Source: Blepharisma stoltei ATCC 30299 (lineage: Eukaryota; Protista; Ciliophora). Taken from it: a DNA stretch of 64,000 nt. The notes below the pieces were generated by a model. That model saw only the letters and a list, made by a program, of their open reading frames with translations. It was not told the origin of the DNA and ran no database searches. The position numbers and the translations under genes are program-made. This document shows positions 8,974 to 44,410 of the stretch, in pieces; position 1 is the stretch's first letter, and the number at the start of each line of letters is the position of its first letter. The DNA is taken from positions 558,001 to 622,000 of the forward strand of contig CBFDEM010000054.1 of the NCBI GenBank assembly GCA_965603825.1. Reading direction: 5' to 3'.

Positions 8974-10977
8974 TTATTCAAACGAAACTATTACTTCTTT
9001 AGCCTTCACAAAATCTCCTTCTTTTTTATGGACCTTTTTAATTGTTGCATTTCTTGGCACTTTAATTGAGTGTTCCATTTTCATAGACTCAATAACAATT
9101 AAAACTGAATTTTCCTTGGCCTCTTCTCCTTCTTTTCCTATAATTTTGATAATTTTTCCTGGGATTGGCGCAATTACATGGCTAATGCTTGATTCCTGTG
9201 CTTTTATTTCTCCCATTTCTTCTTGTTTGATTTTAAGGACGAAAACAGATCCTTCGCTATTTATGACCCACAGGTCTTCTTCATTTTGCAAAACTCTCCA
9301 TGTTTCGATTCCTTTTTCTGTTTCTAATTCATATGTGTTATTTCCAATTAGTTTTCCTTTTACATTAAACTGATGTTTCGCCACATTTACATCAAACCCA
9401 CTTTTTGTCGGTTTTATAGCTACTTTGTGCTCTTTATCAGAAATTAAGCTGACATTCCTTGTTTCTTCATAATTCACCCTGAAATCATGCAATTTGTACC
9501 ATGGTGAGCTTTTTCTTTGCAATTTCTCTGCAGTTTCATCAGCAATGGCTTGCTCCTTTATCAAAAGGCAGACAGAAGCCATTGCTAGATCTCTATTTGA
9601 AGCTGAAGGAAAAGAAAGGAGTTCTTTTTGATGTAAAGGAATAAAGTTTGTGTTGAATTTATAATTCCTGAAATTCTTATGTTGGCACAATGTTCTTAAA
9701 AACTCTATATTGGTGGGAAGCCCACAGACGTGGTAATCATTTAAGGAATGGTGCATGATATTTAAAGCTTGGTCTCGGTTTTCTCCCCATACTATAAGTT
9801 TTGCAATTAGAGGGTCATAGTAAACAGAAATATCGTCACCTTGCACGACACCAGTATCAATTCTAACTTGGTCAGAAGGCTTAGGTGTTTGCAGATATAA
9901 TAGTTTTCCTGATGTTGGTAAAAATGAATTAGCAGGGTTTTCAGCATAAATTCTAGCTTCAACTGCATGTCCTCTTCTCTTAATTTCACTTTGTGTTTTC
10001 GGCAGTGGCAACCCTGAAGCAATTTTGAACTGCCACTCTACAAGATCAAGTCCCGTTATCATTTCTGTAACAGGGTGTTCTACTTGTAGCCTCGTGTTCA
10101 TTTCCATGAAATAAAACTTCTGTGTGTCTTCATCAAATATGAACTCTACAGTCCCAGCTCCTTGATACCCTACAGCAAGGGCAGCTTGTGTTGCTTTATC
10201 TCCCATGTCTTTTCGCTTTTCTTCATCTATCATTGATGGTGCTTCTTCAATGACTTTTTGATGTCTTCTTTGAACTGAACAGTCCCTTTCAAATAAATGT
10301 ACAGCATTTCCATGTGTATCTGCAAAAACTTGGAATTCAATATGCCTTGGACTTGTGATGTATTTTTCCATGATGACCCTATCATCTCCAAAAGATTTCA
10401 AGGCTTCTCTCTTGGCACTTTCGAGCTGCTCGTAAAACTCATTGGGATTATTTACAAGTTTCATACCTTTTCCACCTCCGCCCATAACAGCTTTTATTAA
10501 GACAGGGTAGCCTATTTTGTCAGCTTCTTGCTTAAGTTTTTCCACCTCTTGTGAGTCTTCGTGATATCCAGGAACGACAGGAACTCCAGCTTTTATCATA
10601 ATTTTTTTAGACTCACTCTTTGAGCCCATAGCTAAAATTGCACTTGCAGGTGGCCCAATGAAGATTATACCATTTTCATTACACATTCGTGCGAATTCAG
10701 CGTTTTCTGATAGAAAGCCATAGCCTGGATGGATTGCTTGGACACCGTTGGATTTGGCAATATCAATGATTCTAGATTTATTTAGATAACTTTCTGCTGA
10801 TGGAGCTTTTCCAATATAAAATGCATGGTCAGCCATAGAAACGTGAAGGGAATTCCTATCAGCTTCACTATAAACAGCAACAGTCGAGACTCCTAGCCTT
10901 CTGGCAGTTTTCATAACCCTACATGCAATTTCTCCTCTGTTTGCCACAAGGACTTTTGTAATAAAATTAAGTGCCAT
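8974..10977 (-). CDS. MCCC1: Methylcrotonoyl-CoA carboxylase alpha subunit (biotin carboxylase + biotinyl domain)
   Basis: KVLVANRGEIACRV, GGGGKGM, RDCSVQRRHQKVIEEAP, EMNTRLQVEHPVTE, biotin site ESMKME. Confidence 0.9.
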   Translation of the reverse strand: MALNFITKVLVANRGEIACRVMKTARRLGVSTVAVYSEADRNSLHVSMADHAFYIGKAPSAESYLNKSRIIDIAKSNGVQAIHPGYGFLSENAEFARMCNENGIIFIGPPASAILAMGSKSESKKIMIKAGVPVVPGYHEDSQEVEKLKQEADKIGYPVLIKAVMGGGGKGMKLVNNPNEFYEQLESAKREALKSFGDDRVIMEKYITSPRHIEFQVFADTHGNAVHLFERDCSVQRRHQKVIEEAPSMIDEEKRKDMGDKATQAALAVGYQGAGTVEFIFDEDTQKFYFMEMNTRLQVEHPVTEMITGLDLVEWQFKIASGLPLPKTQSEIKRRGHAVEARIYAENPANSFLPTSGKLLYLQTPKPSDQVRIDTGVVQGDDISVYYDPLIAKLIVWGENRDQALNIMHHSLNDYHVCGLPTNIEFLRTLCQHKNFRNYKFNTNFIPLHQKELLSFPSASNRDLAMASVCLLIKEQAIADETAEKLQRKSSPWYKLHDFRVNYEETRNVSLISDKEHKVAIKPTKSGFDVNVAKHQFNVKGKLIGNNTYELETEKGIETWRVLQNEEDLWVINSEGSVFVLKIKQEEMGEIKAQESSISHVIAPIPGKIIKIIGKEGEEAKENSVLIVIESMKMEHSIKVPRNATIKKVHKKEGDFVKAKEVIVSFE

Positions 10978-34362: not shown

Positions 34363-35958
34363 ATGGGATCTTGCCTAAAAAAGCAAGGAAAAAGCATGAG
34401 AATATCTCAAGAGCATTACACTATTGAAACCTCAATAAGAAAGCATGATTCAGCTCATGACTCTCTAAGATATGTTTTTTTACAAAAAAGTGAACTTTAT
34501 ATAGATATTCACCTAGATTTTGAGTTTACCAAAGTTCTTGGCCACGGAAAATACGGAAACGTGAATTACGCTAAAAGTAAGGATCCACTTATTAAGCAAG
34601 AATTTGCTGTAAAAAGTCTTATTAAGCCTATGATTGAAGATAAAATGTATACAATTCATCGAGAACTTGAGATTCTGCTTTCTGTTGACCATCCAAATAT
34701 AGTAAAATTTTTTTACGCGTATGAAGATCCAAAGTTCATTCATATAGTAACTGAGTATTGCTCAGGCGGAGATTTGCTTTCTAAGCTGTGCCAGGTCGGG
34801 AAATTCTCTGAAGTAGAGACTGCTACTATAATCAAAAAATTACTTGGCGCACTGAACCATTTGCATGGGATGGATATTTGCCATAGGGATATAAAGCTTG
34901 ATAATATACTTCTTGCTTCAGAAGATTCTGTGTCAAATATAAAGCTAATTGATTTTGATTTTGCTAAAAGAATTGACAATCTTCACCTTGACATGAACAC
35001 AATTGTAGGAACTTTGCATTTTATTGCCCCAGAAGTCTTTGATAGAGTATGTGGCACATCTGCAGATTTGTGAAGTCTCGGCATCGTTATGTATGTTCTG
35101 CTTGTCGGGAAGCCGCCATATAGAATTGACAGTGAAAGTGAAGTCCTTGTGCAAATAAAAAATAGAGAACTGGATTTTAATGATGAAGAGTATCAAAGAA
35201 TAAGCCCACTTGCCAAAGATTTATTATCAAAACTACTAGACACTGATTATAATAAAAGAATTACAGCTAGAGAAGCTCTAAAACACCCATGGTTTGTTAC
35301 AGTGAACCAAAAATCAAATGACTGTAATAACGAAAGAATCTTAAAAAGACTGAGACAATACCAAGTAAAAGGAAGATTGAAGAAAGAAATAATGAAAATC
35401 ATTGTGAGGATTCTGGAGCCAGAGGATATTCAGAACTTAAAAGAAGTCTTTGAAAATTTAGACACTGGCCATAATGGATATATCACTTATAAAGACTTAG
35501 AAAAAGGCTTAAGCACGATTGGGGTAACTGATGCTTCTGAGATTGAGCGTATTTTTTAATTAGAAATTTGAAGTTGTGCAGAAACAACTATAAAAGGCAG
35601 ACTAAGATACTCTGATTTTCTTGCAGCAACACTTAATAGGAAATCTGCGCTCACAGAATCTACTCTGTGGGCTGCATTTAAATACTTCGACTATGACAAC
35701 TCTGGGAAAATGACCCCAGTAAATATATATTCTGCACTGAAAAGAGCAGGAGTAGATATAACAGATGAAGATCTAGAAATGATGCTAAAAGAAGAAGGTA
35801 TTTTGTTGACTCAAAATATTGACTTTTCAGAATTCAAAAAAATTGTCCTTCGTAATCTTTATATAGCTGTTGAAAATTTTATAAGAAAAACTTCTTTGCA
35901 GTCTAAACGAAGTATTGGGGCTTCTGGTCTTGAATGGAACGGGTTCAGCTTCATGTAA
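34363..35958 (+). CDS. Calcium-dependent protein kinase (kinase + EF-hands), 526 aa; intron 35549-35563
   Basis: MGSC N-terminus, GHGKYG, AVK, HRDIK, APE, DL-W(TGA)-SLG, EF loops DTGHNGYI and DYDNSGKM. Confidence 0.92.
35549..35563 (+). other. 15-nt spliceosomal intron
   Basis: GTATTTTTTAATTAG; A at position 10; in-frame TAA; removal gives EIEQIW..YSDFLAAT. Confidence 0.92.
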
Positions 35959-36023: not shown

Positions 36024-36923
36024 TTATTCTTTTTTCTCTTCTTCTGCTGCCAATTTACGTTGTGGCTCGACTTCTGCAATGCGGATGTTTGCGGTGCCTA
36101 TTTGTGCTTGGATAAGAGGGTCATTCCAAGGTCCTGCGTTACTCATAAGGCAGCCTACTTGACAATTGCAATTACCTCCTAAGAATTGTGGAACGTTATC
36201 TGCAGGGGCAAGTTCTAATAATTTTTTTTGGAATTTGCTGCCTTCAGTACTGATTTTTTGTTGAGTTCTCTCATCAAGCCATGGTCTTATCACTTTCCAA
36301 GCCATCGAGAACAGTGTTGGAGTATTCACAATAAACATCCTTCCAAGCATTTCTGGGTAGTAATCCTGACCAATTTTAGAAGCCATCTGCACAAACTTGT
36401 ACACCTTCTTGCTCATCAGCTTCATAGAAGACCCTCCCAGGTCCAAAATCGTCAACGACTGCTCTACAGGATGTCCTGCAGCTACTGCACATGCTGGAAT
36501 TGTTATACTAAGCATAGTTTCATACGATTTAACGAAGTATCTTAGCATCCTATCTTCTGTCGTAATTTCAAACAGCCTCTTTAAATCGAGCGCCCCAATC
36601 CTTTCTATATAAATAGGTCTCCCATGTGAATCCGTCTTATGAAAGCCATGAGGATAGCACGTTTTTACCTGTTCAAGCTCTGGAAACTCATAAGACATGA
36701 TTTGGTCGACTTGGAACTCTTCTCTCCACTTTAGATAATTTTGGAACATCTCCATCGCTTTATCAAAGTTGAACTTTCTGGCACGTAGAAATCTGCCTAA
36801 GGTATGGTCATCAAAATTTCCTCCCAGTGCTTCTTTGAATCGGACAAGAACTTGGCGCTCTTCTGGGGTTAGAGTTCCTAGAAGGGTAGGTAGAGGAGTT
36901 GTCAGCTGTTTACGCTCTTCCAT
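36024..36923 (-). CDS. SEC14: SEC14-family phosphatidylinositol transfer protein (CRAL-TRIO-N + CRAL-TRIO)
   Basis: RFLRARKF, YPHGFHKTD..GRPIYIE, QDYYPEMLGRMFIVN.P, PWLDERT..KI, VPQFLGG.C, S..GPW. Confidence 0.96.
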   Translation of the reverse strand: MEERKQLTTPLPTLLGTLTPEERQVLVRFKEALGGNFDDHTLGRFLRARKFNFDKAMEMFQNYLKWREEFQVDQIMSYEFPELEQVKTCYPHGFHKTDSHGRPIYIERIGALDLKRLFEITTEDRMLRYFVKSYETMLSITIPACAVAAGHPVEQSLTILDLGGSSMKLMSKKVYKFVQMASKIGQDYYPEMLGRMFIVNTPTLFSMAWKVIRPWLDERTQQKISTEGSKFQKKLLELAPADNVPQFLGGNCNCQVGCLMSNAGPWNDPLIQAQIGTANIRIAEVEPQRKLAAEEEKKE

Positions 36924-37171
36924 TGTTTATTGGCTTAATAAACCAATAAACAATGGAAGAGCATAAGCAACAAACGATTCCGCTGCCCGCACTCCTAGGA
37001 ACACTAACGTCTGAAGAGCGGCAAATACTGCTGAGATTTAAAGAGTCCTTGGGGGGAAATTTTGATGATGATACCTTAGGCAGATTTCTTCGTGCAAGAA
37101 AATTCAAATTTGATAAAGCAATGGAGATGTTTCAAAATTACTTAAAGTGAAGAGAAGAATTTGGAGTTGAT
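36705..37171. repeat. Inverted repeat centred on 36938 (about 233-bp arms): first 73 codons of SEC14 duplicated head to head
   Basis: Arms align codon for codon with no gaps; perfect 20-bp inverted repeat at 36914-36933 / 36943-36962. Confidence 0.97.
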
Positions 37172-40100
37172 GGTAAGCGAATTTATGAGCATCTAGAGAC
37201 AATGGCGTTCGGCGGGGTAATAAAAGAACCATTAACTCTTTGGGACATAGTAAATGCTCTGCCAAAAAAATCAATAGCACAATTTGTATTTCAGCTGCTA
37301 GCAAATAATAATTTTGAGTATCAATCAATGCAGACTGCAATTAAGCTTTTGCAAGCCCTTATCACCCCTGATAGGTCAAATTCACCATTCAGCTATTTTT
37401 ATTTTCCAGGACCAGGTTGCGGTTTACAGTTAAACCCAGAAGATTTTCAAATTTTCCCGTTCCAAAAAGCAATTTCAGCTTGTTTTTGGATAAGACTTGA
37501 AGACCTAAACTTAAACACCCCTTCAACTTTAATGCTATTTCACTCACAAGGAAATGGCGGGATTGAAGCATATTTTATTGGAAACAAGCTTTATTATAGA
37601 GTGCTTGGCGTTGATTATTCCCCACCAGTAGAAGGCTCTAATGGAATTTTGCTTCACGAATTCCAGCCTGAAGATTGGACATTTCTAGCATTTGAGCACG
37701 AAAAACCCAAAGTTGGGAAATATCAGTTAAGAGTGGTAGTAAATGGAGAAGAAGTGCTGAATTCTCCGATGGATTACCCAAAATTCAAATCTCCGAACCC
37801 TATTTTGACGCAAGCTGCGTTTTGTCTAAGCTTTATAGGCCAAATCAAGTGCATCATGATTTTTGATGACTTGATTTCTGTGCAACGGATGAAGTCAATA
37901 TACCAAAAATCGAATGGAGCTATCTCACAAGGTCATGAAGCAATAAAAGCACTAGTTCGAGGAATTGATAAAAATTTGAATAAAAAGCTTGTGCTTTTTT
38001 ATCATCCACTCAGGACGAATAATAATATAGCTTATGATGGAGTTAGAAAAGCAGATGCCAAGTTTCTAGGAGGAACTGGGGTCAAGCTAGTAAATCAAAG
38101 TAGAATGTCATGCTTTGGTGGGGTCTGTGCACTCTTACCAATTTTAGAAAAAATAAAAAATATCCCTATAAAAACCTCAGAATTATTAAGTGATTGATTT
38201 GGGCTTCTAATAACATGCTTAAGAGATAGGCCAGAAAATCAAGTCGAAGCTTGTATAATGAAACTTTTTAAAGCCGCCCCTGAACTTCTCTTGCAATTTC
38301 CGCCTAACTCTATAACTGAAGAAATAGTCCAGCAATTAGAAGAAATTTCTCAATTTGTAATGCCTCAATTGCGAGACCAATTAACTGGACATTTACTATG
38401 GTTCTTAGATATTTGGAAAAAAACAGAAAAAAATACTCAGGTAAAATTATTTAAATTATTAAAATCTTTATATACGAAGGCACCAAAGCAACTTAGCAAG
38501 CAGGTTGACATTAAAATGATCCTTGAATTGCTGATATGTCATTATGGAGGAAATGATATGATGGTTTCTGAAGAGCAAAATAAAGAGCAGATATGTGATA
38601 TTGTGTCAGTAATTGAAATTATATTTTTAACAGTTGGAGAAGCTATGGCTGCTGAGATAAATAATATAATTTCTGCACTCTTCGGCAAATCATCTTCCTT
38701 TATTCAAATTCAACTATTGCAACTACTAAAAACTCTTCTTAGTGACAGGCCTGGCGATGTATTCGGCGCTCCAGCTTCAGTTTTTGCTAAAAATTTCATT
38801 GATGCATCAGGTCTTGAGCTTTTGCTATTTTTAATATCATCTTCAGTCTCAGAAGTTAGAACTTTGAGTCTTGCATTAACTGACACCATTTTAAATTACT
38901 CTACCAAGACTCAGATTGCAAGCCATAAAGAAATTTTTGTCTATATAAGTTCAATTGTATTGCCGACTCCTAAAGGCATGAGTGGCTCTTTTAAATATTG
39001 GCAGCATTCCATAATATCACCGCACGATACTTTTCAATCAATAAGTTCAAAAGAGGAAGAATCAGTCGAATTTATTACTTCAAAACTACCATCACTTCAA
39101 ATATCTGATGAAAATATTAAAGGGCCACCTATGTCAAAATTCAAAAAACAAATGAAATTTGGGTTTTTAGATGAAGAAGAGGAAGAAATTAAAGATACAA
39201 AGGAGACTAAATTCGACGAAGAAGAGGAAGATTTTGGGATTAAGCCTCCACCAGCTCCATCATCAAAGAAAAAAATCAGTTTTACTTTTTCTGATCCAAA
39301 ACCGATCGAGGCGCCTCGAGAAGCTCCTAAAAAACAGGGTGGGTTTATATTTGACGAAGATGAAGATGCTCCATTAGCTCCACCACCACCTAAGAAAAAT
39401 ATGAAAATGAGTTTTGATGAAAATGCTTTCTCAGCTCCCAAAAAAGATGCCCAAATCAATTTTGATGAAGAAATTTTAAAAATCCCAGCCTCGAAAAAGG
39501 AGCCAAAAATGAATTTTGAAGAAAATGTCATAGTTGCCCCTCCTCCACCTAAAGGAAAAAAACCAAAAAGGAACTTAATGATTTTTGAAGACGCTGAAGA
39601 AGATATACAATTAACAGAATTACCTATGACTGAGAGATTTATAGAGCCAGAAGTCTCAGAAAGCATTGACTTATCAAAAACTCAAAATTCCTCAAAAATC
39701 GTTAAGTCCTTCAGCCAAGGCAGAAAAATGCCCAAATTTTTATCAGACGAGCTGATTATTGACACAGAAAAAATCAACGAAAATTACACCTTTGGGGGAG
39801 AAAAAGGGGAAGCTATAAAGCCTGAAGATGAAGGAGAAGATGATCCTTTAATTAAAGAAATACGTGACATGGCCAAAGATTGCTTAAAATATATGCACGG
39901 AGAGCTTGCAGTAAACCAAGAATTCCAGTTCTACCCTTTGCCTCCTACATTTCGTCCCCAAACAGTAAGAGGATTAAAAACTATAGATCTATCAAGCACT
40001 TTTAAAAAAGTGTCAGAAAACCACCCAATAATTGAAGAAGTCAGCTCAGAAATGTCCCCTCACGAATCTTTAGCCACTCCAAAGCGACATGAAGAAGATG

Positions 40101-43100
40101 GCGTTTATCATGCAGTTCTTGGAATTGTTCTCAAAAAAACTATTGAAGGTGCTGACATTATTGATGACTCTGACCACATAGAATCTAAATCCGGTTTAAC
40201 TTTATTACAAGAAATCGTATCCCGAGCCTCTTTAGAGCTAAAGCATAAAGCCATGCAAGATATGCTGATGCTTACCAAATGAAACTCTTCTAATTCCTCT
40301 ATTTTAGCCCAAGACGCTGATTGGCATTATTGGTTGCTTAATTTATTATTTGAGACTCCTGAGCATCAAGATGAAGGAATTGCGATTTTTGACTTAGGCT
40401 CAAGAATACATACAATAGTTATGAAACAAGCTATGCTAGCTGACGAAGAAGGCTGGAAACATATAAGGAGACTTATATATTGGTACGAAATGAAGAGAGA
40501 CATAGAAAAAGCCAGAAATATAGTAAAAAGTTTACTAGAAAAACTCAGTGAGTCCTTACAGTCAAACTCTATGGGATGCAGACCTGCACTTGTGTCGACA
40601 CTATGAAAAAATTTGGTAATTACAAGTTATTTGTTAGAAGAGTTTGTGATTTATTCAAAATCAAGGTCAGAGGAGGAGCTTGGGGAGTCATTAATAATGG
40701 CTGACGAATGGGAAGATGCTGCTGTTATGGATCTTTATTTCCAATTGCTTGACCCTATATGGCCAGTAGTCCTTTTTAGCAATAAAGAATCAAAGTATGA
40801 AGAAGAACATATCCAGCTTATTAATACTATAGAAAAAGCTGCACAGACAGCGTTCAAGACTGATATTCAGCTGCTTATTTTTGAACCTCCAGGAGAGCTC
40901 AAGCCAAGAGGACTATTTATTAAAACAATCATGCACTTGGCCTGCATGAGCGTAAAAGCTAGCACTAATGAAGAACAGACAAAGCTTTGGCTGTCTATTG
41001 TGGAAAGGTTGATTAAATTTATATTGCTGGTGTCTGAAGCAGGGAAAAAACAAATGCAAAGCCAGACGACAAAAGTTCTTAATGCATGCATTTTATATAC
41101 AGTTGGATTCTTTGCTTCTTATTTAGACGAGCTCAGAGAAGATCAGAAAACACAGCATATTCAAACATCGGTCACAAATATTTTGAAATATATTTTTACA
41201 GTCTACATATCAAGCTTAAAATCAGGCCAAAATCAAGGATTTAAAGGATTTTTAAGATCTGGCTTTGTTTCTACAACAGTAAGTGAAGATGTTGCTACAA
41301 TAATTCTGCAATATTTATCTGACACTGATATGGATCGCTTAGAAAGCATGATGGCTGACAATTTTGAAACTCTTGACTATCTAATCACCACTGACGACTG
41401 GAAATTCGCTTTAATATCGGCAGCTTCCCAAGTAAACGACCAATTTGATAACAAAATTAGAACGAAAAATATTTGTCAGCATAGAGAAAAAGTCGCAGAA
41501 AAACTTAGCAAGGAGTGAGACGCATTAAGCAAACAAGTTGAGGAAACCAATACAAGAATAAATAACCATGTGCAGAAAATTGCTAACGATAAATCAAGTG
41601 ATGAAGAAAGGAAAATAAATAACGCAATTATCTATAATGAAGAAAGAACGAGGCAAAGGAAGCATATGCTGAATAAAAGAATGAGACTTTTAACTGAATG
41701 GAGAGGGCCGTGGCATGTTGAACAAGAAATCAAACTTGAGCCTTGCCAGCTAATGGATTGGCAATACACTCGACCCATTCTAAAAATAAGATCAGATAAA
41801 TTCAAGCCTTTTATGAAACAAGAACAAGTACAAATTTCAGAAAATCCCAATTTATTAAAAGAGCTTTCGCCAATTATTTTAAGGAAAGCTTCAGAAATTG
41901 AATATGAAGAAGATGATAAATCTATGAACACTGAGTCTGAAGAGCCAAGTGCGAGAGCTTCATTAAAGCCAAAAATTGACTCTTCTTTAGCTTCTATTTT
42001 AAGCCATGAAAGTTTTAGTATCCAATCAGAAGTCGGAATTATTAATACATTAACAGTGAGATATGGAATACTTCAGCTCATTACATCAAAAAAAGAACAA
42101 AAATTGCGGTTCATTTATGACCCAGAAGTCAGGCACAAATTTCAATCAAATGTAGAGCTTTTCGAGCATTCAGCATCACCAAATAAATCATATATAAAAG
42201 ATTGGAATGTAGAATCTTTGGATGTAGTTTTTCCGAAAACCTATGTAATGAGAAATACAGCCGCTGAGTTTTTCTTTAATGATGGCAGAAGTGTATTAAT
42301 AAACTTTACTAATCCTAATGAGAGGCATGATTTTGTGAGCCAAATTAAAAAAATAAAGAAAAATGCTGTTAAAAATTTGGAATTTTTCAAAAAACCAAAC
42401 CCAGTAAAATTCATGGCAGAAAGCGGGATGACTGAAAAGTGGATGAATTGGGAAATCAGCAACTTCGAATATTTAATGTATCTGAATTATGCAGCTGGAA
42501 GATCTTATCATGACTTAACACAATATCCAGTTTTTCCATGGGTTATTAATGACTACCAATCTCCTACCATTGACCTTAATAATGAATCTATATATAGAGA
42601 CCTTTCCAAAAACATGGGCAGCTTAGGCTCAGTTGAAAGAGCCCAAAGCTTCAAAGAGAGATTTTCTTCATTTGGCTTCCCTGAAGAAATTCCTCCATTC
42701 CATTTCGGCTCTCACTACAGCAACCCTGGAATTGTTTTCCACTATTTATTAAGGCTATTCCCATACTCTGAAGGCGCCCGAGAGCTTCATGGCGGCAAAT
42801 TTGACCTCCCAGACAGACTTTTCAGCTCAATTTCTGAGTCTTATAGGCTTTCTACTGATGATATTGCTGATGTCAGAGAATTAATCCCTGAATTTTATTA
42901 TCTGCCTGAATTTTTGATCAATAAAGAAGACTACGATTTTGGCTTAACACAGCAAGGCAATAAAATTAATAATGTCCAGCTTCCTCCATGGGCGAATTCT
43001 GCTTACGATTTTATCAGAATCAATCGAGAGGCATTAGAATCCGATGTTGTCTCAGAAAGAATCCACAACTGGATAGACCTTATTTTTGGATATAAACAAA

Positions 43101-44410
43101 GAGGCGATGAAGCAGAAAAAGCAATGAACATTTTTTATTATATGACTTATGAGTCTAATATAGATCTAGACAAAATCGAAGACCCTACCCTGCGAGCTTC
43201 TATTGAAGCTCAAATCGTTCACTTCGGAAAAACCCCTTCACAATTATTCAAAAAGCCTCATCCGCAGCGAGAAAATCCCCACAAATTCAGCCCTGGCCCA
43301 ACAGTTATATCTAAAGAAGCCAAACTGAAAATTTATTTCCCTCAATATCGCAAGCCTTTTGATAAGCCTTTTAGCTTCATGAATTATTTTGATCTCCCTG
43401 ACAAAGCTATACTAAAAGCTAAAATGTATAAAGATAAAGAAATCTTCGCAATCAGGAGAAATGGGAATTTAATTAAATATAGCTGGTGGCCTACTCCTAT
43501 GGGTGAATGTAAAACTCCATTTACATGTGCGAATAATAAAGAAATTCAGCTACTAAAGGACCAAAAATCATGGACTATTGAAAATCAAGACAGATCAGCT
43601 ATAGGATTTAACGCCCCAATTGAGATTATGGACCAAGGAAAAATCATAGTGAAAGGAGGGTTTTGGGATGGAAGACTGACGGTCCAGAAAGCAAATGTAA
43701 AGGACCATCCTCATAAATGGTGCCATCATAATACAATTACATGTATTGATATAGATGAAGAAGAAAAAGTAGGGATAACTGGAGGAAAAGATGGAGATGT
43801 ATTGGTCTGGCAAGTTAAAGGAGATACATGGCAGCCTAGATGGCAATATATTGAGCATGATGATCAAGTTATGTCAGTCACTATATGTCAAGAACTTCGG
43901 CTATTTGCAAGCTGTTCTTTGGATGGAACCTGCAATATTTATTCGCTTATGAAAGGCAGACTTATTAGAGTTATCAGTCTTCCAAATTTTTCCCCTATTT
44001 ATATGGTCAAATTTTCCCCAGCGGCTCCTGCAAAAGTAGTGTTATTTTCTTCTCAAGAAAGCTGCTTATACTCATTTTCTATTAATGGAGAACCTTTATA
44101 TAGAGTTCATGAAAGGTGTGTCCATATGACGAGTCCTATTATTTTGAGAAATTTAAACCAACAGGAATTTCTTATTTATGGGACTGAAACTGGAGATATT
44201 GTGATCAGATATGCATCGACACTTGAACCGTTGAGGAGATTTTCAATTACTGGAGGATCTCCTGTGCTGACGTTGATGGCTAATAAAGACCTCAGATTTC
44301 TGCTTGTTGGGTGTGCTGATGGAGAATTGGGCGTATTAACTGATCCTGACGCGACTCTTTTGGTATTGGAAAAGCAATGACAACTTGGAAATGTACTTAA
44401 TCTCGGCTAA
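36953..44410 (+). CDS. BEACH-domain protein (ConA-like, PH, BEACH, WD40) with an N-terminal SEC14 CRAL-TRIO-N segment, 2485 aa
   Basis: Six track ORFs share one frame and are separated only by TGA. Motifs: WEISNFEYLMYLN..AGRSY.DLTQYPVFPWV, HFGSHYS, GKFDLPDRLF, DVRELIPEFY, WIDLIFGYKQRG, FGKTPSQLF; TAA 44408-44410. Alternative start ATG 37202. Confidence 0.9.

Follow-up and report, generated by a model that had tools for sequence, protein, structure and literature searches.

The window analysed here is a 64,000-nt stretch of the Blepharisma stoltei ATCC 30299 genome (GenBank assembly GCA_965603825.1, contig CBFDEM010000054.1, positions 558,001–622,000, forward strand; coordinates below are those of the window) in which a complete SEC14 gene lies head to head with a long gene for a BEACH-domain protein that begins with sequence derived from SEC14. 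Reading only TAA and TAG as stops and TGA as Trp, the BEACH gene is a single open reading frame (ORF) of 2485 codons at 36953–44410 (+ strand), running from ATG 36953 to the stop at 44408–44410, with six in-frame TGA, 31 TGG and zero TAA or TAG codons within it. In B. stoltei UGA encodes Trp, introns are 15–16 nt long, and untranslated regions and intergenic regions are very short (10.1101/2021.12.14.471607). An identical 2485-aa product is already present in the public annotation of the somatic genome (GCA_914767885.1, record CAJZBQ010000054.1), where its start is the choice of an intronless AUGUSTUS model and is not derived from RNA. An earlier model-generated reading of the letters of this stretch, made without database searches (the sequence-only reading), had proposed a chimera here; the segment it quoted across the joint, NYLK-W(TGA)-REEFGVD-GKRIYEHLET-MAFGGV, matches the ORF translation exactly, and its 2485-codon frame leading into ConA-like, PH, BEACH and WD40 domains was reproduced by frame reading and Pfam. 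The main features are as follows.

36024–36923, − strand: parent SEC14 gene, complete, 299 aa, with CRAL_TRIO_N and CRAL_TRIO (Pfam, PDB match, RNA contigs)
36706–36937, − strand: left arm of the inverted repeat, SEC14 codons 1–73 plus 14 nt upstream (repeat search)
36924–36952, no strand: 29-nt spacer between the two divergent ATGs, with two facing copies of CCAATAAACA, each abutting an ATG
36939–37170, + strand: right arm of the inverted repeat, BEACH-ORF codons 1–73 plus a 14-nt leader (repeat search)
36953–37171, + strand: SEC14-derived codons 1–73 of the BEACH ORF, CRAL_TRIO_N or tripod helices (Pfam, coding-type divergence)
37076–37107, + strand: 32 nt identical to the contig-28 SEC14 paralog, which break the RNA contigs at 37078 (sequence match)
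37148–37150, + strand: TGA codon for Trp66, a conserved Trp of the SEC14 N-domain (sequence comparison)
37172–37201, + strand: retained ancestral BEACH codons, aa 74–83, equivalent to codons 4–13 of the ortholog (alignment)
37202–37204, + strand: M84, equivalent to the internal Met14 of the ortholog and not the ancestral start (alignment with ortholog and homologs)
37262–37267, + strand: in-frame loss of 76 aa following aa 104 (by comparison with the ortholog, the contig-46 paralog and more distant homologs)
37454–37882, + strand: concanavalin A (ConA)-like β-sandwich, Laminin_G_3 (Pfam, structure model)
38198–38971, + strand: DUF4704 α-solenoid of neurobeachin/LRBA type (Pfam, 37 bits; cut-off 22.9)
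42098–42346, + strand: PH_BEACH (PF14844; Pfam, E 7e-11)
42434–43270, + strand: BEACH domain (PF02138; Pfam, E 2.2e-116, full length, 1–276 of 276)
43847–44335, + strand: WD40 propeller (PF20426 NBCH_WD40, E 1.5e-19; PF00400, E 4.6e-9)
44408–44410, + strand: stop codon of the 2485-codon ORF (frame reading)

The SEC14–BEACH reading frame

Pfam searches, run on TGA-free pieces of the ORF, gave the domain order CRAL_TRIO_N, ConA-like, DUF4704, PH_BEACH, Beach and WD40. The CRAL_TRIO_N match (PF03765; aa 31–62) is above threshold (36.2 bits against a cut-off of 23; E 6.6e-9), while the Laminin_G_3 match falls slightly below its own (24.8 bits against 27.6; E 2.8e-5), the β-sandwich being visible in an AlphaFold2 (AF2) model at a predicted local distance difference test (pLDDT) score of 94–98. 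By its predicted domains the product is a member of the neurobeachin/LRBA class, with every defining domain present. The CRAL_TRIO lipid-binding core (PF00650), noted as missing in the sequence-only reading, had no Pfam match in any piece of the ORF and SEC14 homology ends at aa 73, so that the product is neither a functional Sec14 family member nor a lipid transfer protein. The adjacent parent SEC14 closely matches yeast Sec14p (1AUA; E 4e-61) and is also close to AtSFH5.

The 5′ ends of the two genes form an inverted repeat with arms of 232 nt each, 80% identical (complementary) and separated by 1 nt, far beyond what chance would produce. Residues 1–73 of the BEACH ORF are 78–85% identical to the tripod of the adjacent SEC14, and the right arm ends at 37170/37171, the limit of about 37171 that had been given for the SEC14 homology. 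The arm, the parent SEC14 and the contig-28 paralog share an identical leader, CCAATAAACA-ATGGAAGAG, and the CCAATAAACA motif, one A shorter, also precedes the ATG of a SEC14 ortholog in a related species (see below). In the comparisons that follow, the SEC14 sequences are the gene of this contig (contig 54; A), the arm (B), the paralogs on contigs 28 (C) and 56 (D), and the ortholog (E). The codon for Trp66 is TGG in A and C and TGA in D and E.

Ancestral arrangement and origin of the junction

Comparison of the N-termini of orthologous BEACH proteins, suggested in the sequence-only reading, drew on a syntenic ortholog on a 24.9-kb Logan contig (L012) from a related ciliate that reads TGA as Trp, reached through its SEC14 fragment in a search with a 65-aa N-terminal piece. 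L012 shares the gene order of the window, with helicase and kinase followed by SEC14 and a head-to-head BEACH gene, and its BEACH ORF (2436 aa) is 75% identical to the window protein across 2358 residues. It starts METETLVYESLETMASGG / METETLVYESLETMASGGIIKEP, with its own ATG 506 nt from the SEC14 ATG, and codon-level comparison found no SEC14 arm at this BEACH locus. The contig-46 paralog and more distant homologs from an exhaustive HMMER search (P0002, P0007, P0001 and others) have the same type of start. M1-E2-T3 of the ortholog align with G71-V72-D73 of the window protein, which are SEC14 codons, and the sequence joining SEC14 to BEACH lies at 37171–37180. In codons 78–83, four synonymous changes and one replacement separate the window gene from the ortholog. 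As the ancestral ATG is gone and the codons upstream of M84 are coding, translation must start at one of the in-frame ATGs of the SEC14-derived part, namely M1 (36953), M57 (37121) or M59 (37127).

An extension of SEC14 homology to aa 82, indicated by HMMER (YEFPE versus YEHLE), was rejected, as BEACH homologs have I-L-Y-E/D-E-L-E at this position and the ortholog has YESLETM; the likeness is possibly coincidence, or microhomology.

By sequence comparison, the fusion is real, derived and lineage-specific, and the ortholog keeps the ancestral arrangement. As this comparison shows, SEC14 and BEACH were originally head to head, ~500 nt apart and with separate ATGs. In the B. stoltei lineage an inverted duplicate of the SEC14 5′ end (~14–15 nt of leader plus codons 1–73) then took the place of the spacer and of BEACH codons 1–3, ATG included, and was joined to the remainder in frame. 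Translation would now begin within the SEC14-derived segment, with ATG 36953 as its most likely start; this ATG keeps the same CCAATAAACA-ATG context as SEC14, and the tripod helices would be read into helix 1 of the BEACH protein. Nonsynonymous distances (dN) between full-length SEC14 genes are 0.071 (A–C), 0.128 (A–E) and 0.145 (C–E), and in a 219-nt tree A, B and C form one group (99% support), with D and E as outgroups. Dated by these SEC14 distances, the fusion postdates the split from the L012 species and falls near the duplication that yielded the contig-28 paralog.

No CRAL_TRIO_N domain was found in the first 450 residues of 22 long BEACH homologs. The B. stoltei genome (41.46-Mb, 64-contig assembly) contains five CRAL_TRIO_N matches and at least 14 BEACH genes, of which only this pair is joined. 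The statement in the sequence-only reading that no such fusion was known thus holds for the 22 long homologs, the genomic set of at least 14 BEACH genes and the syntenic ortholog. A literature search found no paper describing a protein with CRAL_TRIO_N or CRAL-TRIO plus BEACH, and look-ups of the exact product in public assemblies with 65-aa and 331-aa pieces gave no match, the species’ own records apparently being largely left out of that collection.

Selection, transcription and the start of translation

Differences between the arm and its parent are distributed 10/4/33 over first, second and third codon positions (p = 3e-7). Across codons 1–73 the proportion of synonymous differences (pS) is 0.74 (saturated) and that of nonsynonymous differences (pN) is 0.07; for codons 1–42 alone the values are 0.73 and 0.095 (Fisher p = 1e-11). 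Changes private to the arm comprise 18 synonymous and 8 replacement changes in codons 1–73, and 14 and 8 in codons 1–56 (p = 1.4e-4 versus neutrality). The nonsynonymous to synonymous ratio (omega) of the arm, ~0.12–0.17, is like that of both intact SEC14 paralogs, and the arm has zero stops and zero indels. Residues 1–56 of the arm are distinguished from both SEC14 paralogs at positions 7, 9, 13 and 20. The pattern of changes indicates that the borrowed arm is under protein-level purifying selection, divergence being of coding type even within codons 1–42. Selection for the palindrome instead of the protein was considered and rejected, as the arm’s own changes sit at synonymous sites and avoid replacement sites. 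Codons 42–61 of the arm are nearly identical to the contig-28 paralog, including the 32-nt exact match, and may represent a short (ectopic) gene-conversion tract.

RNA data were available as assembled contigs, not reads, from four runs of one study; all four are identified as RNA by their lack of the 15-nt introns at 34490, 35549 and 35852. In each run, contigs begin at 37078 (in one run 37083) and continue unbroken over the junction into BEACH and beyond 37911, and the segment 37150–37260, where the sequence-only reading had looked to RNA for a decision, is continuous and unspliced in all four. A 24-nt intron at 37174–37197 (GTAAG...TAG) was rejected, as this segment is kept in all RNA contigs, from which the nearby 15-nt introns are removed. 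That reading had also named two outcomes unfavourable to a fusion: transcripts beginning downstream of 37175, and a second full-length SEC14 continuing from 37171. Neither occurred: the contigs start at 37078, and what follows 37171 is BEACH. Each arm is matched separately by RNA contigs at 99–100%. SEC14 contigs extend to 36921, and no RNA contig lies on 36922–37077; the contigs thus establish that the junction and sequence upstream of M57 are transcribed, and say nothing about ATG 36953.

A transcription start at 37078 (the same base in three runs, with TTTAAA 35 nt upstream) was rejected, as the contig end is a k-mer break at the 32-mer shared with the contig-28 paralog: because of this match the first 31-mer unique to BEACH begins at 37078, making the end a break in the assembly graph. 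A short branch of low coverage upstream of 37078 would be clipped during assembly. The practical lesson is that an apparent transcription start in RNA contigs, here 37078, can be a k-mer artefact caused by a paralog.

The SEC14 contigs have a k-mer depth of ~280–326, 17–38 times that of the BEACH contigs in every run, and this gap, although contig depth is a poor measure of expression, gives no support for co-regulation with the parent gene. Of the interpretation offered in the sequence-only reading, the in-frame SEC14 tripod/BEACH chimera, its protein-like evolution and its continuity in RNA were borne out, and co-regulation was not.

Taken together, these data point to a neurobeachin/LRBA-type BEACH protein that probably has a 73-residue SEC14 tripod as its N-terminus, with M1 as the most likely start. 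That at least some SEC14-derived residues are part of the protein is close to certain; that the whole tripod from M1 is included is highly probable. Several points weigh against this interpretation. No contig lies over 36922–37077, the use of ATG 36953 is inferred from the selection signal, and all of the RNA evidence is contigs from one study. The selection signal in codons 42–61 may be confounded by gene conversion, which leaves codons 1–42 unaffected. The tripod normally packs on the lipid-binding core, and its autonomous folding is an assumption. A present-day start at M57 or M59, which we regard as unlikely, would retain only the last tripod helix.

Such an internal start is the best surviving alternative, although improbable. 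Transcripts would begin within 36956–37120 and translation at M57 or M59, adding ~17 SEC14-derived residues, codons 1–56 now serving as promoter or flanking sequence. This would fit the stretch 36922–37077 without an RNA contig, the TTTAAA at 37038–37043, and the good context of M57 (GCAATGG), in such an mRNA the first AUG encountered; in the related species, too, an RNA-like contig from the ortholog stops a few nt from its ATG. However, codons 1–56 are constrained on the arm lineage, as seen in both the excess of synonymous over replacement changes and the low pN relative to pS (values above), the ATG and a 10-nt leader motif are intact, and the 37078 boundary is fully explained by the paralog-shared 32-mer, leaving no positive sign of an internal start, so that the switch would need to have been very recent.

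Translation from M84 (ATG 37202), with the arm a dead piece of SEC14 acting only as 5′ UTR or promoter, is very unlikely. M84 has an A at −3 and the contig-46 paralog likewise starts M-A, but M84 matches an internal Met, Leu or Ile of helix 1 in all homologs, the start of the ortholog lies 13 residues upstream, and codons 78–83 have been kept as protein (the four synonymous changes and one replacement described above). Moreover, two in-frame AUGs (37121 and 37127) precede 37202 in the mRNA, and the arm combines low omega (~0.1) with the absence of stops and indels.

Least likely of all is an artefact, either a palindrome made by assembly or foldback chimerism or a join of two germline genes made only in the somatic genome by developmental deletion of an internal eliminated sequence (IES): no independent DNA or RNA sequence was seen across 36922–37077, and Blepharisma excises TA-bounded IESs, with a TA present at 37174–37175, but foldback gives near-identical arms and these are 80% identical with differences mostly at third codon positions, each arm has its own RNA contigs, both reading frame and leader motif are intact, an IES located at the junction would leave the encoded somatic protein unchanged, and an inverted germline-type duplication, absent from the ortholog, explains the junction without it.

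Two further observations concern the transcripts and leaders of this locus. Two-allele bubbles (3 and 5 linked single nucleotide polymorphisms) are present in the RNA contigs of three of the four runs, at 37912, 37933, 37963 and 40111–40192, and fit the mixture of mating strains reported for the RNA-seq time course. SEC14 RNA contigs stop ≤2 nt from the ATG, which suggests a SEC14 leader only a few nt long, and CCAATAAAC(A) abuts the SEC14 ATG in the window (36924–36952), on L012 (~9985–10000) and in the contig-28 block (L002), kept across paralogs and species despite saturated synonymous sites; we regard this motif as a candidate initiator, core-promoter or leader element.

Structural context and relation to known proteins

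AF2 predicts eight helices N-terminal to the ConA-like sandwich in homolog P0002 (pLDDT 93.5) and four in the window protein (pLDDT 88.8; residues 1–66 are not in the model), codons 78–83 falling in helix 1. With the in-frame 76-aa deletion after aa 104, thirty residues beyond the graft, three tripod helices have been gained and about four solenoid helices lost within 110 residues. Since the same gene lost four N-terminal helices, the models suggest structural replacement, helix for helix, more than a targeting module that was simply added, a conjecture equally as good as the ‘borrowed targeting module’. The graft would then be a folded helical module extending or partly replacing the N-terminal α-solenoid, and may add a new interaction or membrane-targeting surface. 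Whether the tripod is an autonomous functional module, kept on the BEACH scaffold as a surface for targeting membranes or partners or as a substitute for the four lost helices, is a more tentative proposal, possible but on balance doubtful. The 76-aa deletion may stem either from a germline deletion or from an exapted IES.

Like neurobeachin and LRBA, the window protein has a C-terminal PH-BEACH-WD40 module, DUF4704 and a ConA-like sandwich within ~2400–2500 aa; unlike these, it has a SEC14 tripod in place of the family’s own first residues, and four solenoid helices are deleted. Proteins of this type are presumed endomembrane trafficking scaffolds. Residues 1–73 copy the tripod of Sec14 phosphatidylinositol transfer proteins (yeast Sec14p, 1AUA; AtSFH5, 7Y10) and are under similar constraint, but here the tripod stands alone, without a CRAL_TRIO core. 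The N-terminal 129 residues of yeast Sec14p, a longer segment than the 73 residues here, suffice for Golgi association. In solved Sec14 structures the tripod lies on the lipid pocket and is required for folding of the whole domain (PMC9963013). Multidomain proteins such as neurofibromin (Sec14-PH), SEC14L2-4 (Sec14-GOLD) and plant SFH proteins (Sec14-nodulin) carry a complete Sec14 domain with the partner C-terminal to it (PMC9963013). The window protein likewise joins Sec14-derived sequence to trafficking or signalling modules, but it has the N-subdomain only, placed N-terminally on a BEACH protein.

As in other genes born by local inverted (palindromic) duplication and in-frame fusion, the leader, ATG and first domain of a neighbour were captured head to head; unlike in those, both the ancestral and derived states are available, and it is exactly the recipient’s start codon that is lost at the junction. 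This makes it an unusually clean case of domain capture, with neighbouring donor and recipient, a readable inverted duplication around a 29-nt centre and the ancestral state preserved in an ortholog. The captured tripod has been under long-term purifying selection despite missing its usual folding partner, suggesting for Sec14 biology that this subdomain can have a role of its own; if it is autonomous, the gene is a natural experiment on the independent function of the tripod. For BEACH proteins, the N-terminal regions of which are poorly understood, the extreme N-terminus is marked as a site of exchangeable function, and for ciliate genomics the locus indicates that a 29-nt head-to-head spacer can serve two genes.

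Elsewhere in the window protein, a 36-aa insertion relative to the ortholog (aa 816–852; window 39400–39560) lies between DUF4704 and the C-terminal module, in a low-complexity region rich in Pro, Lys and Glu with recurring PPP-x-KK and F-D/E-E motifs.

The remaining SEC14 paralogs of the genome have different surroundings. On contig 28 (L002; 72941–76840) a kinase paralog is followed by an 89% identical SEC14, arranged as in the window; this block has no inverted arm and no BEACH gene, and homology upstream of the ATG ends after ATAAACCAATAAACA. The third SEC14 (66% identical; L003, 271–2340; contig 56, ~536437–538506) occupies the C-terminal end of a 690-aa open frame that starts with MGVCCGK (acylation-like), continues with weak Kelch-like repeats (Pfam E 0.02–0.05) and an acidic linker before SEC14, and may be a second SEC14 fusion in this genome.

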